From Salpingoeca rosetta (lineage: Eukaryota > Protista > Choanoflagellata), in the NCBI GenBank assembly GCA_033442325.1, contig JAWQFM010000034.1, forward strand, positions 1-64,000: a stretch of 64,000 nt of DNA, written 5' to 3'. The first letter of the stretch is position 1. Each line of letters starts with the position of its first letter. Shown piece by piece: positions 12,453 through 56,470 of the stretch. The notes beneath the pieces were generated by a model that was not told the DNA's origin, searched no databases, and saw nothing but the letters and a program-made list of their open reading frames with translations. A program made the translations under genes and the position numbers.

Positions 12453-15400
12453 ATGTCCGGCGGAGAGAAGAGAGCGAGGGAGGAGGTGGAGGCGTTGCTG
12501 GCGCAGACGAAGCTGAAGGATGGGGTGAAGGAAGAGATCAGGGCCATCGCCAACAACACGTGTGGGGACAATGTGGGGTGAGTGCAAAAGCAACCAAAAC
12601 GACGTGTTGGAACATGCATGCATGTGTTGGAGAGAAGGACACTTCTTGTGGTTGTGCTTATTCTCCCCTCTCTCTGCTGCTTGGCTTGTCCTTGTGTTGC
12701 AATGAGCTTGGTGTGGCTTGCTGTTGGGTGTTCACGTGTACGTGTCCTGTCCCCTCGCACCGCCTGGACACACTGTGTGTGTTTGTGTGTGTTTGTGGCA
12801 GGTTGTGACTGGCACCCTCATGTTTTTGCTCTCTTTATCCTCATTATTCTTGCTCATTTCATGACACACACCATTCATTTGTAATTACAGCTTGGTTGGT
12901 GCTGGCCTCGGCGACATTGAGGCGCGTGCAGTGGCTGAGGCGCTCAAGGACAACACTTGCCTCAAAGCACTCGAGTGCGTGGTTATGATGAATCTGCATC
13001 GTGTGACATGCATGGTTGATTGGGGTGGCGGTGTTGCATGTTGCACCCCTTTCTCCTCTCCTGCTGGCGCATGTTTGGACGTGTGTTCACCGTCGCTCCC
13101 TGCGGTTCTTGTGTGTCTGCACAGCCTGTGGGGCAACTCCATCGGTCCTGAGGGCGCTGTGGCGTTGGCGGAGATGTTGAAGCACAACACGACCCTCGAA
13201 AGACTCGAGTGCGTGTGTACACGCACACACGCACACACATGTATGCTGCGTCACTGCCGTTGCACCTTTATTACGTACACATGTGCCCATGTGTGGTTGA
13301 TGACTGTGTTGCCACCCACAGCAATCATCATCACGCACTCACTCTGACTTCCTCACTCACGTGGCATCATCGCCCTGCGTGACAATACACCAACTTGACA
13401 GCCTGTTTGGCAATGACATCGGCCCTGAGGGCGCCGTGGCGTTGGCGGAGATGCTGAAGCACAACACGACCCTCGAAAGACTCGAGTGCGTGTGTACACG
13501 CACACACGCACACACATGTATGCTGCGTCACTGCCGTTGCACCTTTATTACGTACACATGTGCCCATGTGTGGTTGATGACTGTGTTGCCACCCACAGCA
13601 ATCATCATCACGCACTCACTCTGACTTCCTCACTCACGTGGCATCATCGCCCTGCGTGACAATACACCAACTTGACAGCCTGTTTGGCAATGACATCGGC
13701 CCTGAGGGCGCTGCAGCGTTGGCGGAGATGCTGAAGCACAACACGGCCCTCAAACAACTCTAGTGAGTGTGTACACGCACACATGCACACATGTATGCTG
13801 CGTCACTGCCGTTGCACCGTATCACGTGCACATGTGTGGCTGGTGGGGTGGGGTTCAACGACTGTGTTGCCACCCACAGCAATCATCATGCTCTTCCTCA
13901 CCCATGTGGCATCATCCCCCTGTGTGGCATCATACCATCTTGACAGCCTGGGAGGCAACCGCATCGGTCCTGAGGGCGCCGTGGCGTTGGCGGAGATGCT
14001 GAAGCACAACACGACCATGACATTGCTCGCGTGAGTGTGGACACGCACACACACACATGTATGCTGCGTCACTGCCGTTGCACCTTATCATGCGCACATG
14101 TGTGGTTGATGACTGTGTTGCCACCCACAACAATCATCATCACTCACTCACTCACTCTTCCTCACCCATGTGGCATCATCCCCCTGTGTGGCATCCACCA
14201 TACCGTCTTGACAGCCTGTACAACAACCGCATCGGCCCTGAGGGCGCCGTGGCGTTGGCGGAGATGCTGAAGCACAACACGACCCTCGAAAGACTCGAGT
14301 GCGTGTGTACACGCACACACGCACACACATGTATGCTGCGTCACTGCCGTTGCACCTTTATTACGTACACATGTGCCCATGTGTGGTTGATGACTGTGTT
14401 GCCACCCACAGCAATCATCATCACGCACTCACTCTGACTTCCTCACTCACGTGGCATCATCGCCCTGCGTGACAATACACCAACTTGACAGCCTGTTTGG
14501 CAATGACATCGGCCCTGAGGGCGCTGTGGCGTTGGCGGAGATGCTGAAGCACAACACGACCATGACAGGGCTGGGGTGAGTGTGTACACGCACACATGCA
14601 CATGTATGCTGCGTCACTGCCTGTTGCACCTTTATCATGTGCACGTGTGTGGTGGAGTGGGTTCAACGACTGTGTTTCCACCCGCAGCGATCATCCCGCA
14701 CGCACCCTTCCTCACTCATATGGCATCATGGCCCTGTGTGGCTTCATACCATCTTGACAGCCTGAGCAACAATTCAATCGGCGATGAGGGCGCTGTGGCG
14801 TTGGCGGAGATGCTGAAGCACAACACGGCCCTCAAAAGACTCTAGTGAGTGTGTACATGCACACACACATGTATGCTGCGTCACTGCCGCTGCACCTTAT
14901 CACGTGCACATGTGTGGTTGATGACTGTGTTGCCACCCACAACAATCATCATCACGCACTCACTCACTCTTCCTCACCCATGTGGCATCATCCCCCTGTG
15001 TGGCATTATACCATCTTGACAGCCTGTACAACAACCGCATCGGCCCTGAGGGCGCCGTGGCGTTGGCGGAGATGCTGAAGCACAACACGACCCTCGAACG
15101 ACTCGGGTGAGTGTGTACACGCACACACACACATGTATGCTGCGTCACTGTCGTTGCACCTTATCATGTGCACATGTGTGGTGTGGTGGGGTGGGGTGCA
15201 ACGACTGTGTTGCCACCCACAACGATCATCATCACGCTCTTCCTCACTCACGTGGCATCATCGCCCTGCGTGGCATCATACCGTCTTGACAGCCTGGGGG
15301 CCAACTCCATCGGCCCAAGGGGCGCCGCGGCGTTGGCGGAGATGCTGAAGCACAATACGACCATGACATCACTCTTGTGAGTGTGTCCACGCACACGTGC

Positions 15401-18400
15401 ACATGTAGATGGAAATGGGCTGCGTTGCTGCCGTGCTGTCACTGCCGCCGCTCAAACCAGTTGCAAGCAAGCAGGGCGTATTCCTGCCTGCAACAGTGAC
15501 CCGCTTCGTTCCTGTTGCCAACTCACCTGTTTCTCCATCTCATCCAACAGCATTTCCCACAATGGTATCACGGAGCGTGGCATGGTGAACGTGCTGAAGC
15601 AGCTGCAACACATTGACGCCAAGGCCAAGATTCTGTGAGTTTCGTGTGCTTGCGACCTTGCTCCACCCACATGCACCGAATCAATTTCAGTTCAAGTTCT
15701 TTCATCTCACATTCCCTCTTCACGGCATCACAGGCTGTTTGAGGACAAGCTCAAATCCTCCACTGCCGTTGCCCGTGCACTGGCCACGCTCCGCACCAAG
15801 CGGCCACACCTCCACGTCGTCTACAGCCTGTGAGTTCATACAGAGTGCTGCGTCAGGCGTGCTCTTGTTAAAACCACCCGTCTCATCCCCATCTTCTTGC
15901 CTCCGTTCACGCTGCATTATTCTTCTCCTCAGGTACGACGGAACAGAGGACGACTTCAGCCCTGCCGCCAAGGCCGCCTACCAAGACCAGCTCGATCTTC
16001 TCAGGCTGCTAGAAACAGGCTCCGTTCCTCTGGAGACAGCAAAAGTGTTCGTGTGCGGCCATGGTGGCATTGGCAAGACGACCATGATCGAGTCGCTCCC
16101 AGGTGCTGATGAGGCCAGCGGCTACCTTTCCCGATTCCTGTCATCTTGGTTCGGGCAGCCACGTCACGATCCAGAACAGCCTGGTGCGCGCACACCCGGC
16201 ATTCGGGTCTGTGAAATGAAGCTCAAAGACTCCAGCCGTGCCAATGATGAAGCCGCCTCTCTCCGCGTGTACGATTTTGGCGGGCAGCTCGCATATCACG
16301 TGATCCACACGCTGATGATGTCGGATCGCTTCGCTGCGTTTGTCGTCTGCGTCGACCTGTCTGAGCCGGAAGAACATGTGAAGGAGCGCGCCAACTACTG
16401 GCTGCAGTTCATCTGCACACGACTGAAGCAGGGCATGGCAGCCGCGACAGCAACGGCAGACGGGGATGCCATGGAAGAGATGAGGCCGCGTGTGCTCATT
16501 GTGGGCACCAAGAGGGATCTTGCTCGCAAGAAGAGACTTGTGGATGAACATGGCCAGCCACCGTGGGGTGCAGCGATGGTCGCACACTTGAAGACCACGT
16601 ATGGCAGCATCGTTGACATCCAAGACAGCCTCATCTCCCTCAACTGTCATCAGGGTGGTGAAGCCGGGTTTGATGTGCTCCGGTCACGCCTTGTGCGACA
16701 CTGGCGATGGCTGAGAGGGCGTGAGCTTCTCGTCCCCAGAGTTGTGGATCTACTTGCCACAACCCTTCGACCAGCCAGGGAGGAGAAACGAGTGTGGGCC
16801 ATCGATGCGCTCTTTCAGTTAACCCTATCCCGCGCACCTGGACTCGATTTGACATCCTTCGACATGGCCATGTTTTCGTCTGCCTTAAGGTACTCTGTCA
16901 TCAAGACTTCGCAGATCTGTCATCCGTGGTGTGTAATCAGCTAACTGACTTGAGTACCAGTGCAAGAATTCTCACCCCTCCTCCGTTGCTACCTATGCTT
17001 CCCACACATGTACACAGGTACCTCCACACGCGCGGCGATCTGCTCTGGTACTCCAACAACTCCACCTTACAGGATTTCGTCTTTGTTGACCCGAACTGGC
17101 TGTTACATGACGTGTTGGGGAGAGCGCTGACGCCGGATGGCGTGCAGCAAGGCTCGATCACAAAGAAAGGGGTCGTGACATTCACGGACCTGGAGACCGC
17201 ATTCCGAGGCATCGCCGACGCAGATCTCGTCATCAACGTGCTGCAGCACACGCTCCTCTGCTTCGAGCTGCTGCCTTCAGACGATGGCCAACGGCGATTC
17301 ATGCTGCCGAGCCGCGTTGAGAAGAAGGTCGATCTCGCAACCGCCTGGCCTCAAGCTGGTTTCTGGCCTCTCTATGCCGGACGACTGCTGGTGGTCGAGA
17401 GCAAGGCACTTGCGCTGCCACCTGGCTTCTTCCCGCACGTGCAGACGCTGTTGCACAGGTCTTTTGGCGCAACGCTGAAGGTGTGGCCAGACGCCTTTTT
17501 CTGTGAACACGATGCTGTGCAGTGCCTTGGACTACTGCGGGGCGATCGAGAAGTCGACGTCTGGGTGCGGGCACCTTCTGGCGCAGAGCACAAGGCCCTG
17601 CCATTCATGACACAGGTCGGTTTGTGAGCGATTATGAGTGCTTGTGGGCATGTGTGTTGTGTGTGTGAGCTTGCGTTGTTGTGCCCATCGCTTGTCAGCA
17701 GATGATCAGCTTCCATCTTTCACCCTCATCCCATCCTCTGCTCACTTGCGTGTTGATGGCAGGTGCTGTCTGTGCTACAAGGGGAAGCAAGAGGGATTGA
17801 CCACGTCCACCTTGTTCTCAGCACGAAACGCCTGAAGTGCCACGAGCAGTACCCAGCCGCTCACAAGCTCGAGGATCTGACGGACAAGGGCCCAGACGAG
17901 CTCGTCACGTCCACGCACCACAGGGAAGGCCAGACCCCAGTGTCCGACCGCGTTGGCGATCTGTTGCTGCAGGCGCCCACGCAACCACCACCCATCATGC
18001 CGTCTTGGCAATTGCGCGACCACGAATGGCACCACCCTGCTTGGCGGCTTGATGACACCTTTGATGAGCAGCTCCCGTGGAGCGGACCGAGCTCGCATGG
18101 CGTGTATTCGGCACCCTTGCCACCAAACACCGACCTCTATCGATGGATAGAGAGCCAGATGACGCCGGGCCTCACCCTGTCGCGCGTGGAGATGACCAAG
18201 TCCACCACGATGCTGCGGGCGTTTCAGACGCAAGTGGAGCGGTCAGCGACGCGTCGTGGTGATCCAGACCCTGCAAATCCCTTCAACAAGGACTTTGGAC
18301 TTGGTGATCCAGAGAAGAAAGCCATGCTTCATCGGCTCAGGACGCTGTTTGCAAAAACACGCACCGGCTTGAAGCACGTCAACGTGCTCATCGGTTTCCA

Positions 18401-18881
18401 CGGGTGTGCAGAAGATGTCGCTGACAGCATCACCGCGTGTGGGGCAGCGAACTTCAGCAGCCCGGGCGACCGTGGCTTCTTCGGATCTGGCATCTACCTC
18501 ACACCGCAGACAAGCTATGCCGCAGGGTACTCCACGCGTGTTTTGTTGAATGGTGATTTGCGCTCACCAAACTCAAATGACGAGCACGTGATGCTCCTGT
18601 GCGCTGCCAGCGTTGGCCTGGCATACCCGATCACCCGGGCCGCAGATTACCCCCATGGCTCGAATGAATGCTCCTACTATGGGAAGCCTTTTGATGAAAG
18701 CCAAGACACCCACTATGCGCAGGTGACACGCGCCACCAACTTACAGGCCACGCCCACACCTGGCACGTTTGCCTTTGAGGAGTACGTCGTTTCGCAAGAG
18801 GCGCAGGTCCTCCCATTTGCCAAGGTGTTCGTGAAGGTGGACATGGACGCCTATTTGTCGCACTTGTCAACCCTGCCATGA
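12453..18881 (+). CDS. ROCO-family protein: 11 RI-type LRRs - Roc GTPase - COR - PARP-like ADP-ribosyltransferase domain (~1272 aa, 16 exons)
   Basis: Exons: 12453-12577; eleven 84-nt exons starting 12891, 13125, 13402, 13679, 13947, 14215, 14492, 14761, 15023, 15293, 15551; 15734-15829; 15933-16889; 17018-17615; 17763-18881. All introns are GT-AG and the total of 3819 nt is in frame. Roc motifs: GHGGIGKTT, TPGI, YDFGGQLAYHVIH, IVGTKRD. COR-like: LRYLHTRGDLLWY...FVFVDPNWL. ART motifs: IGFHG, GFFGSGIYLT, MLLC, EEYVVSQEAQVLP. Confidence 0.9.
13125..15376 (+). repeat. Tandem array of ~262-277-bp exon+intron units (9 near-identical 84-nt LRR exons)
   Basis: Core GGCGCYGYRGCGTTGGCGGAGATGYTGAAGCACAAYACG recurs 9 times. 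Introns 13209-13401, 13486-13678 and 14299-14491 look identical by eye (193 nt each). Confidence 0.95.
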
Positions 18882-19488
18882 ACACCAAGAGTGGAGACGA
18901 TGTCATTCACATGCAACCTTTGTTGTTGTTGTGTGTGTGTGTGTGCGTGCGTGCTTGTGTGTGCGTGCGCGCGTGTGCGTTTGTGCCTGTGGTGGTTGGC
19001 AGCTTCGTACTTCCGCCAATTGTCTTGCACATGTTTTTGCGTTTGCGTTCATGCACAGCCTCCGTTCCCGTGTGTTTGCTGTTTCCTTTCGTTCCTACAG
19101 TGGTCATGCTGTTCCTTCTCATACCAGCCTGTTGCCACCGAGTTCCTTCTGCATTTGAATCCTGTTCAGTTACCACCACACATGTTTCCGCGTTACCGTT
19201 GCTTTGGGCCCAATACACGGTCCTCTGAACTTCGTGATCGTCTCGCCCCCATTGTAATCTTGATACCAATGTACAAATGCCCCCCCCCCTTCTCAATCCC
19301 CCTTCCCCCAGATTCATGCACTAATAACGCAAGCATTGCGAATCAACTGAAGCATCGATGAAATACAACAAGACAAAGCGATGGCTGCAGCCACGCACGC
19401 TTGCAGCAGCACTGCAACAACAACAACAACAACAAAGCACCACTAACAACCACCCAACACAATCGTACAACCCCCCTCTTCACCCACA

Positions 19489-20844
19489 TCAATGCAAGTA
19501 GACGGGGATCTGGCAGATGAAGGGGCGCTTGAGTTCACACTGGATGTCCTTTGGCACTGCCATGGCCCTGGACTGTCTGCTCCGAAACATGAGCGCGGGG
19601 CAGTTGAAGCGACACTCGCTGCGGGCTGTCGTTGGCGTCCACGGTCCAAACGCCAACGTCTCGGACGGGTTGGCTACACCACCGTCGCCTGCAAGACTGG
19701 CAGGCAGGTATGTCTCGATCCACGCCTGCGTGTGCAGTTCTGTATCTTCACTGCCACCCACAGCACGCGTCGCGTTGCGCGCCAGCTTCGCCACGTGGTC
19801 GCTGACAACATGTGATTGAACGATGGCAAGGAAGCCGCCTCGTGACGCGCATGCACTTGTTGCCTCAAACCACGTTGCAGGGGAGTCGGCCACTGCCTCG
19901 TACCGGTACCCAGCGAATACGGTTGTCGTGGTTGTGGTCGTGGTCGTCGTGGTGGTTGTTGTTGTGGTAGTAGTGGTCGAATCGAAGATGAAGGTGACAA
20001 TCACGCTGCCGGTGAGCTGGACTGGGTCCTCCAGCGTGCCACGCACGATGACGGAGTAAGCCACGCCAAACTGCAGTTCCCGCTGCAACAGAATGTCGAC
20101 CCCGCTGTTGGTGAGGTAGAAGTACTCGCTGTCCGGTCCGCCGAGCGTGTAGTCGAAATCGTGCCGCTCCAGGCCGAGGCCAAAGTCACGAAGCGCGGGC
20201 ATGCGGAACACGCCCTTGCCGACGACGTTATCGCGTGCAGAGAGCGATACAGTGTATGTGGCATCCCCAACGAACAGCGAGTTGGTGACGACGACTCGGT
20301 AGGAGACGGTGTCGTTTGGGTTGTCGGAGCGGCTGCGCACACCAATGTACACCAGGTCCGACGAATCCGTGTTGTTCACAAGCACGGCCTTTACGGGGGC
20401 GTCCCCCTCCACAGAGGCGTCGTTGTTGAAAGGGCCAGGACTGTCATTACCCGACACATACAAATCGCTGCGTTGGAGGGTGGTGTGCGAGTGAGTGTGA
20501 GTGTGTGTTTGTGAGTGTGTGATTGAGTGAGTGTGTGTGTGAGAGGATGGCTGTGTGATTGGCTGTGGGAGGATCGTTGCGTGCACCGTACCGCAATACG
20601 CCGCGGGCATGACCAAGAGTGGCACCACGTACTCGTGTACACAACGGCCAGCGACCAAGCATTGAAGCGAGCAAGCAATTTCGCGTACACCGCTGTCATT
20701 GCAAGTCGGTTCGGTGGCCACTCACGTATCGCCGGAGAGCTGCTCGATGTAGATGAGGACATCGTCAGTCAGGTCCTGCAGGTTTGGTTGGAAATAGCGG
20801 ATCTCGCCCGGGGCAGTCTCGTTCACCATTATCTGCCGCCGCAA

Positions 20845-54259: not shown

Positions 54260-56470
54260 ATGAGCTTGAATCGCCCTCTTCTTGAAGAGGAGGAGCTGCT
54301 GGTAAGCAGCTCCGGCGATGCAGTCAATGCTGAGGAGAATGACGCGGGCTCCGTCCTGTCCAGCACGCTGGACGACATGGACGACATGGACTACATGGAA
54401 GGCGATGATTTCCTTGACGATGCCACCGTGGTCAACATGTGCGACGTCACTGACGAGGACGAGCAGGACCAGGAGGGGCAGCGTGCCGTTCAATACTTGA
54501 AGAAGCAGCTGGCCAGACTTGAGCGCTCCGCCAACAAACGGTCCACCATGATCCCCATCATTGCTGTCACCCGACGCGCCCTCACCAGCACCGCAATCCT
54601 TTGTGAGAGATGGGCGTGCTGTGGAGCACTCTTCAAGCAGTGTGCACTGCGTTGGAGCAATGGCACTACTTGTATGCGTGCAGTTTTGCTGCTTGTGTTA
54701 TCGTGTCGCGGTGCTCCGCAACCTGTTCCAGCCCTTGTCTGCCTGTGCTTCAGCAGGAGCTGCAAATGGCTCATATTTGTCTCATGTATGCTGTGCGTGC
54801 GCTCGTTTAGGGATCATTTATGCTCTGGCTTGGGTGGTTATCGTGGAGCGCTGGGTGATTGCGGTGTGTACGTAGGTGCTGCATGCGTGCTTTTGTTTGT
54901 ATGTGCGAAGGTGCTACGTGTGTGTGTGTGCATGTGTGTGTGTATGCGTGTGCGTTGTGGCTGCCTGTGTGGTGCGTGCTTGTGTTTGTATGATGTGTGT
55001 GCGCGTGCGCATGCGTGTGTGTGTGTGTGTGTGTGTGTGCCTGCAAGTCCTCAAGTCTGCTCCAACCTCAAAAGAAGCTGTTTAGGCTTGCGTCACGCCT
55101 GTGCCTGTATGCAAGCTCATGTCCTTCCTACCCTACCTTGTAGCAGCACCTCCCCATTCCTCCCACTTCTCATCGGGTCGGGTGCATTATGCATGCATTG
55201 GACACGTGCAGGATATCCAACGGAACAGCGCCTCTGACAAGAACAAGAGCGAAAGCCGTTTTCCGCCCATCGCAACCACTCTCATTTCCCTGGCCTTCCT
55301 CAACATGCTGCACCTCATCAGGTAAGGTTCGAACGAGAACGCTCCTCCCAACCGACTGACTGTGCGCACTTGCTTGCATGGCGCGACGACCATGACGACA
55401 CTCTGCCACCACGCTCACGTCAATCAACAACTTGCACCCGCACCAACAACTTGCATCCCCTTCAACAACACCAGGCGCCGATCACACTACATTGCCAAAA
55501 CACCGGCAGATGTGATGCGGTCGCTTACTGCTGGCCTCTCGTCCGGCACGTTTGCTGTGTCGTATTCCTGGGGGCATTGGACCAAGACGGTTGCACGCAA
55601 CGCGTTCAAGTGCTTTGCAAACGGTGTGTGCTGGATTGACATCCGTAACATCTTGCCGGGCCACCGCATCCAGGACACGTGTGCAGAGGCCATGGCAAAC
55701 GCTGATGCAGCCATCGTCTTCCTGTCGGACCAATACCTTCGGTCGCAAAACTGCTGCATCGAGCTTCTCAACCTGGAGCCACAGTGCGCGAGGGTCTTGG
55801 CAGCCATGCGCAACAACTGGATCGACGACCTGCAAGATGCCGAGAGCAATGGCGGCACTGGCACGATGCCAGATGGTGGGCGCAGACCTCGCGTCGCCGG
55901 AACACAGCGGAATACTACCGAGTTTGACACCTACACCCTCTCCCAACTCCTGCAAAGAGAGCCTGGCCGTGCGTCCCGCCTTGTCGTCATCGTCAGCCTG
56001 AACGCTTTCGACAATGTGCGTGGTGTGTGTGGCCGGGGGGGGGGTAGGAGGAAGCGTGTGTGTGTGCATGTGTGAGTGTGCATGTGTGTGTGTGTGTGTG
56101 TGCATGTGTGTGCGTGCGTGTGTGTGCATGTGTGCATGTGTGTGTGTGCACTTGTGTGTGTCAAGACTGCACGCGCTTGTCCTTGGTACGTGCAGGTGTG
56201 TACACTAGCCAACCTTGCTGGCATGCACCTTTATTGGGTTGGTGCTTCATTCGTGGCTCCACCTGTCAGCCGCCTTTCTTGCACCAGAATTCACGCGTCC
56301 CTCTCTTCCCACATCTTCACAACCATCCCTGCTTGTCCACAGCAACGTGAGCTCCGGACTGAACTCGTGAGCATCCTCAGCAATGCAGGGCACTACGTCT
56401 GGTTTGCAAGGCCATCCACAGAGATCCAACTGCGTCGTCGCCTCCCAAGGTCCAGCCTTGCTACTTTTGC

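Follow-up and report, generated by a model that had tools for sequence, protein, structure and literature searches.

In the first 64 kb of contig C34 (JAWQFM010000034.1) of the choanoflagellate Salpingoeca rosetta, a stretch of 64,000 nt referred to here as the window, we analyzed a gene at 12453-18881 on the + strand. It joins leucine-rich repeats (LRRs), a Roc GTPase domain, a COR domain and a last-exon domain that is predicted to fold as a PARP-type ADP-ribosyltransferase (ART). We consider it probable, with some reserve, that the product is a cytosolic Roco protein whose output is a GTP-gated, H-Y-E type ART instead of a kinase.

Joining the open stretches at canonical splice sites gave one gene of 16 exons, with a coding sequence of 3819 nt and a product of 1272 aa. 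The ATG lies at 12453, the single stop is terminal and ends at 18881, and all introns, 99 to 313 nt long, are bounded by GT..AG. The surrounding region has eukaryotic character, with short GT-AG introns and a G+C content of ~55%. Over its full length the protein is colinear with the independently annotated paralogue PTSG_09285 (residues 1-1272 versus 1-1250, 78% identity). The initial annotation, which was made by reading the letters of the window, had described one in-frame spliced LRR-Roc-COR-ART gene without signal peptide or transmembrane segment. The uniform GT-AG introns, the lack of an internal stop and the colinearity with PTSG_09285 bear out the first part. As to the second, the Kyte-Doolittle mean stayed at or below 1.5 in every 19-residue segment of the protein, whose N-terminus is hydrophilic; hence neither a transmembrane segment nor a signal peptide is indicated and the protein is likely cytosolic. 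The gene is laid out as follows.

12453-12577, + strand: exon 1, with the start codon and a 41-aa hydrophilic N-terminal segment (gene model; amino acid identity 100% on C28 and 92% on C27).
12891-15634, + strand: eleven 84-nt exons, each encoding one 28-residue LRR of the ribonuclease-inhibitor-like (RI) type (LRR_6 matches; the 15376/15551 joint is in RNA contigs).
15734-15829, + strand: linker exon of 32 aa between the LRRs and Roc (RNA joints on both sides; 65-81% conserved in paralogues).
15933-16889, + strand: Roc GTPase exon, including the start of COR-A (Pfam Roc 33.9 bits; G1/G3/G4).
17018-17615, + strand: COR exon, with the remainder of COR-A and most of the presumed COR-B (57-90% identity in 11 paralogues; E 6.5e-8 over positions 47-140 of the COR-A profile).
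17763-18095, + strand: first third of the last exon, a low-confidence linker that is possibly the end of COR (AlphaFold2 (AF2) predicted local distance difference test (pLDDT) 34-69 for exon residues 1-80; ratio of nonsynonymous to synonymous substitution rates (dN/dS) 0.23).
18096-18851, + strand: predicted PARP-type ART catalytic domain (VIA Z 17.5 against tankyrase; Foldseek E 7e-11; Pfam PARP 25.4 bits; triad).
18852-18881, + strand: C-terminal tail and stop codon (gene model).

To follow transcription and splicing, four sequencing runs were mapped on 15250-19150 (3.9 kb), with most of the repeated LRR region lying outside; three of them behave as RNA and one as DNA. RNA contigs of two studies (X4 and X6) carry the joints 15376/15551, 15634/15734, 15829/15933, 16889/17018 and 17615/17763, and the second of these joints was additionally present in reads of X21. 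The raw stranded reads of X21 all came from + strand RNA and left the intron bins empty. Of 203 reads, 107 were at least 99% identical to the window. The RNA-contig pieces flanking the Roc exon showed 0 mismatches over 307 nt and over 496 nt (16392-16887), while the Roc exon of the nearest paralogue is only 69% identical in protein, and these pieces therefore derive from this copy.

The last joint, 17615/17763, by which the initial annotation had connected COR to the last exon, was confirmed by the RNA contigs of both studies. The nearest paralogue was compared over a single stretch, 17560-17960, where its identity to the window is 88-91%; the contig that carries this joint reaches 97%, against at most 91% for any other assembled copy. 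This contig differs from the assembly at 17846, 17847 and 17861, whereas the contigs of the other joints have 0 mismatches. At these positions the assembly reads G, C and T, and all four runs, RNA and DNA-like, read A, A and G, which are the bases of the C2, C24 and C20 copies. Since those copies are only ~91% identical over the stretch and the contig is 97% identical to the window, we attribute the differences either to gene conversion over a short tract or to a mistake in assembly or polishing at the locus; their sole coding effect is Q929K. Further, a loose contig end at 17612 runs on into the last exon of the C28 paralogue, implying that the homologous joint is used there too. These results indicate that the gene is real, intact and transcribed from the + strand.

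The LRR module consists of 11 repeats, the number that had been counted initially. Each has 28 residues and sits on its own 84-nt phase-1 exon within 12891-15634. Single exons score 18-20 bits with Pfam LRR_6, and the module of paralogue P0001 scores 63.1 bits; repeats of 28-29 residues that match LRR_6 are characteristic of the RI type. The LRR exons and their introns are tandem duplicates, the introns being 150-193 nt long and several of them near-identical. From repeat to repeat, amino acid differences fall at strand positions 1, 3, 4, 6 and 24-27. The variation within the gene mainly affects the x positions of the LxLxxNxI strand, and there is hardly any in the helix GPEGAVALAEMLKHNT.

The Roc exon (15933-16889) scores 33.9 bits with Pfam Roc PF08477, above the cut-off of 27. 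Its G1 P-loop GHGGIGKT (16057-16080), G3 DFGGQ (16273-16287) and G4 GTKRD (16504-16518) are all intact. Searching the PDB with the Roc exon by phmmer gave 4wnr as the sole solved relative (E 3.5e-4), which is deposited as 'Leucine-rich-repeat protein' and which we take to be an archaeal Roco Roc-COR fragment. The COR-A queries had to be split at the 16889/17018 intron, which cuts through the domain, and the two parts matched PF16095 with E 1.8e-8 (34.9 bits) and 6.5e-8 (33.0 bits), just below the curated cut-off of 35.3. In precomputed Pfam assignments COR-A is present in all seven annotated paralogues and Roc PF08477 in six of the seven. A single-sequence phmmer search of the PDB with the COR exon gave no match. 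Pfam scans of the Roc, COR and last exons detected no kinase domain, which sets the protein apart from LRRK-type kinases. Thus, a Roc domain with intact G1, G3 and G4 is followed directly on its C-terminal side by COR, as is typical of Roco proteins and as the initial annotation had proposed, with COR-A significant at E ~1e-8 and only just under its bit threshold.

For the last exon, an exhaustive HMMER search returned 389 cluster representatives at E <=1e-3. In an alignment of 45 of these homologues, G214, G241, G243, Y245 and E340 (last-exon numbering) are invariant and H213 is conserved in at least 90%. The triad corresponds to H1113, Y1145 and E1240 of the full protein. The codons of His (18399-18401, in FHG), Tyr (18495-18497, in GIYL) and Glu (18780-18782, the second E of FEEY) stand where the first reading had placed an H-Y-E triad, at FHG ~18396, GIYL ~18490 and EEY ~18778. 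A single-sequence phmmer search of the PDB with the last exon found no match, and the PARPs were reached only with a profile built from the 45-homologue alignment. This profile matched tankyrase-1, PARP15, PARP16 and PARP14 at E ~1e-4, with no clade preferred. In the tankyrase-1 alignment, HG and GxGIY lie in the scored stretch, and the Glu stretch lies only in a second, non-significant one.

We modeled the last exon by AF2 with the same alignment and obtained a pLDDT of 84.6, exceeding 90 through the core. Foldseek with this model found the catalytic domains of tankyrase 1/2 (E 6.7e-11, probability 1.0, target TM-score 0.71-0.74), and VIA-align superposed model residues 112-363 on ~188 of 209 tankyrase residues with Z 17.5 at 2.5-2.9 Å. 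All ESM Atlas neighbours of the ART model are PARP catalytic-domain clusters. Solved PARPs are only 12-19% identical to the domain. From these models, the last-exon domain, in which the H-Y-E triad is conserved, is predicted to adopt the fold of PARP catalytic domains, and the structural check that had been suggested for it, by AlphaFold and similar tools, thus came out in favour of an ART.

The initial annotation had treated the locus as a single odd gene. This does not hold, since the S. rosetta assembly (55.4 Mb, 68 contigs) contains 12-13 paralogues, seven of which are already public. The nearest database proteins are S. rosetta PTSG_13043 and PTSG_09169. The PARP-like last exon occurs in 13 genome copies of 53-100% identity, none with stops, and the order Roc exon, COR exon, ART exon is found at 12 of the 13, that is, at this locus and 11 others. 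The search for paralogues with the same C-terminal effector, which had also been proposed, was therefore successful at 11 other complete loci. A conserved N-terminal exon lies upstream at 7 of these 11 and LRR exons at 6, and the LRR number differs among copies. The 13th copy (L024, G000:C27:5977-6855) has a shortened ART exon that sets in at residue 82; it lies at the extreme start of its contig, without an upstream Roc or COR exon, and matches the public 244-aa fragment P0003. The C24 and C20 copies (L015 and L016) are ~95% identical over the C-terminal 300 residues, which points to recent duplication. The match to the Roc exon begins at residue 108 in the C20 copy, whose LRR exons lie ~6 kb further upstream.

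Over 26-66 paralogue pairs, dN/dS was 0.23 in the ART exon (0.22 in its catalytic part), 0.19 in COR and 0.23 in Roc, and values of ~0.2 in all three exons indicate that the copies are maintained as coding genes. For eleven of the 13 ART-exon copies the distance to a contig end is less than 65 kb (p ~1e-7 by a naive binomial). Positions include 17.7 kb on C34, 6 kb and 24 kb from an end on C27, 2 kb from an end on C24 and 37 kb on C2; the others are on C20, C28, C33, C25, C13 and C32. We describe these copies as near contig ends rather than subtelomeric, because no telomere repeat was found at the start of the window and because repeated families can themselves break assemblies.

Seven copies correspond to the public proteins PTSG_09285, 13043, 09099, 10355, 08520, 08728 and 09169, which are 54-79% identical to the present gene. 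The public paralogues are named hypothetical, 'PARP catalytic domain-containing protein' or 'Poly [ADP-ribose] polymerase'. The public protein collections searched did not return the protein of C34:12453-18881 itself. The genome also holds six more distant Roc-COR genes without an ART exon, with COR identities of 36-43% (C1:491761, C19:110318, C29:20815, C2:396073, C19:345460 and C26:762192). An open reading frame (ORF) scan without gene models downstream of these six recognised no swapped effector except a large TPR array at C29.

Beyond this genome, a 1233-residue protein of S. infusionum carries COR-A followed by the same ART domain, and an SRA contig carries a COR segment followed by the same domain, with an upstream ORF that is Roc. 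Elsewhere the ART domain is fused to ARM repeats and to PH, actin, ANF-receptor, F5/8-C and DUF4116 modules; one ARM-repeat-ART protein sits on a Tara Oceans contig. Because its fusion partners are so varied, the domain appears to be a mobile output domain of protists.

In the literature, Perina et al. 2014 (PMC4245714) described actin-linked 'PARP4-like' proteins of S. rosetta without mentioning Roc, LRR or GTPase fusions, and Citarelli et al. 2010 likewise do not mention them. A Roco review (PMC6337361) mentions neither PARP nor ADP-ribosylation. A full-text search found no description of a Roc-COR-PARP protein, and the locus tags of six of the seven paralogues (PTSG_09169 being outside the search) were not mentioned in paper text. 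The view expressed from the outset, that this architecture was not known to be characterised, therefore stands: it is present but uncharacterised in public data, and a variant of the Roco family with an ART output is new.

We then compared the protein with known systems. It shares the LRR-Roc-COR tandem with G1, G3 and G4 with Roco proteins such as C. tepidum Roco, M. barkeri Roco2, Dictyostelium Roco1-11, LRRK1/2, DAPK1 and MASL1/MFHAS1. Where these have a kinase or death domain, or in bacterial Roco no output domain at all, the predicted output here is a PARP-type ART; the LRRs are moreover 28-residue repeats of the RI type with one repeat per exon. With PARP/ARTD enzymes, best tankyrase 1/2, PARP12 and PARP15, the predicted fold is shared across essentially the whole catalytic domain, with H-Y-E, GxGIY and HG present. 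It differs from them in its identity of 12-19%, a profile-PDB E of only ~1e-4 and an Ala for the aligned Ser. None of the accessory domains of the named PARP clades (ankyrin/SAM, WGR, macro, WWE) was detected in this protein.

Animal and plant NLRs, which combine a STAND NTPase, LRRs and an effector, resemble the protein in having a repeat sensor, an NTPase switch and an effector, in their RI-type LRRs and in forming a multigene family. In contrast to NLRs, the LRRs here are N-terminal and the domain order is reversed. Pfam scans found no NACHT or NB-ARC, and the only P-loop signal outside the Roc/Ras families was a 16-bit AAA_16 match over the same P-loop. Because the NTPase is a Roc GTPase and not a STAND NTPase, the protein is not a member of the NLR family. 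Of the 'NLR-like logic' claimed in the initial annotation, the fused LRR-Roc-COR-ART architecture is real, but with Roc as the switch the likeness to NLRs is by analogy only.

Beyond the intact motifs, the fold, the splicing, the transcription and the constraint described above, the mechanism we propose is modeled on the Roco family (C. tepidum Roco, LRRK2). By this analogy, Roc-COR may act as a GTP-dependent conformational or oligomerisation switch. The LRR module may bind a partner or ligand, or may hold the enzyme in check. The switch would then gate a predicted NAD+-dependent ADP-ribosylation, by which the protein would modify itself or a target. The triad alone does not tell mono- from poly-ADP-ribose as the product.

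Several results weigh against this reading. The last exon scores 25.4 bits with Pfam PARP PF00644, just below the cut-off of 26.7; of two paralogues, P0002 exceeds it (35.3 bits) and P0001 does not (23.5 bits). An Ala is invariant in the 45 homologues where the tankyrase-1 match has Ser. This Ser contacts nicotinamide and helps to hold it in PARP1 and tankyrase; diphtheria toxin also has Ala there. Both COR-A scores fall narrowly short of their threshold. RNA depth was zero at 18263-18393, just upstream of the His codon, in all three RNA runs, and the DNA-like run covers the segment; dips alone are no finding. An in-frame GT..AG pair at 18259-18411 (153 nt) would on paper remove the catalytic His, but no joint was present there in the mapped runs. 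An AF2 model of the full-length paralogue P0001 from a 9-sequence alignment reached a pLDDT of 58 with the LRRs alone confident, which is too poor to place an LRR-ART contact. A homodimer prediction with two COR copies of paralogue P0159 gave a score of 0.00; this is no answer and counts neither way on dimerisation.

The low Pfam PARP score of this copy and the Ala at the tankyrase-aligned Ser position are what one might see if the ART domain were a pseudo-enzyme, serving as a binding or scaffold module despite its conserved triad. Inactive PARP-fold proteins do exist; plant SRO proteins turned up as remote neighbours in both the PDB and the Atlas, where one cluster bears the name 'probable inactive'. 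However, the 45 homologues, divergent as they are, show little or no variation at H, Y, E and the glycines around them, and dN/dS is 0.22 in the catalytic part, which makes loss of activity quite improbable. It is harder still to credit that the model wrongly joins two genes or that the copy is a silent pseudogene. The three differences at 17846, 17847 and 17861 in the last-joint contig, and the absence of this copy from the public protein set, would fit such an error. Against them stand the 97% identity of that contig to the window (<=91% for other assembled copies), the 0-mismatch contigs at all remaining joints, 1272 codons without a stop and the identical exon order at 11 other loci.

As to the biological process, the protein may serve in immune sensing or in ordinary signalling. 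In the signalling case, the family would, like LRRK2 and the Roco proteins of Dictyostelium, regulate the cytoskeleton, trafficking or transitions between life stages, with ADP-ribosylation replacing phosphorylation. We entertain this tentatively. The Roco core is the same as in non-immune members (PMC2927912), the partners of this ART in other proteins include actin, ARM-repeat, PH and ANF-receptor modules typical of cell-biological regulators, and several studies of the organism that are unrelated to one another contain transcripts of the gene. On the other hand, a dozen near-redundant copies near contig ends with variable LRR faces would be unusual for housekeeping regulators.

These same features could instead point to an immune receptor with NLR-like surveillance. 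A ligand of microbial or viral origin would be sensed by the variable face of the LRRs, Roc-COR would switch on, and the ART would either modify a target in the pathogen or the host or halt the cell by burning NAD+. Speaking for it are the expansion to 12-13 copies with differing LRR numbers, the 11 of 13 copies within 65 kb of a contig end (p ~1e-7 by the naive binomial), the repeat variation at the x positions of the LxLxxNxI strand beside a near-invariant helix, and the RI type of the LRRs. RI-type LRRs are also the type found in animal NLRs. However, selection on the Roc, COR and ART exons is purifying (dN/dS ~0.2), the window start lacks a telomere repeat and repeated families can break assemblies by themselves. 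Expansion alone does not amount to immunity, as the 11 Roco genes of Dictyostelium serve non-immune functions (PMC2927912). An immune role is thus a plausible hypothesis built on circumstantial features, namely copy number, contig-end position, RI-type LRRs and strand variation, and we regard such a receptor as rather doubtful. The more specific proposal of a choanoflagellate family of Roco-based innate immune receptors, in which diversifying LRR faces would detect microbial or viral cues and GTP-loaded Roc-COR would release an ART that modifies a target or depletes NAD+, seems unlikely. If it were true, a unicellular organism closely related to animals would have assembled, independently and from a Roco scaffold, the sensor-switch-NAD+-enzyme logic of NLR, TIR and SARM1 systems. 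Any immune role of the family would add a non-STAND, ADP-ribosylating receptor class to pre-metazoan immunity.

The preferred reading, a Roco protein with an ART output, matters for Roco biology. Work on Roco proteins has proceeded mostly through LRRK2 in Parkinson's disease, where it is still asked how Roc-COR governs the enzyme joined to it. In the present protein this switch would be wired to a different and easily assayed type of enzyme, an ADP-ribosyltransferase. S. rosetta is genetically tractable and belongs to the unicellular organisms most closely related to animals, and with a dozen natural variants the family lends itself to comparing how Roc-COR gates an output domain. The protein also widens the catalogue of PARP domain architectures, on which the PARP surveys (PMC4245714; Citarelli et al. 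2010) are silent as regards Roc-COR-ART.

We also recorded some features outside the gene. The genome contains 48 TIR_2 matches. One of them (G000:C13:1706318-1706632, - strand) shares the strand of the C13 paralogue and precedes the Roc exon of that gene by ~4.3 kb, and another lies in the window at 55554-55769 (+ strand), ~37 kb downstream of the gene. The neighbouring gene at 19489-20721, on the opposite (-) strand, encodes a long poly-Thr run and, judged by eye, a candidate segment of C-type-lectin type.

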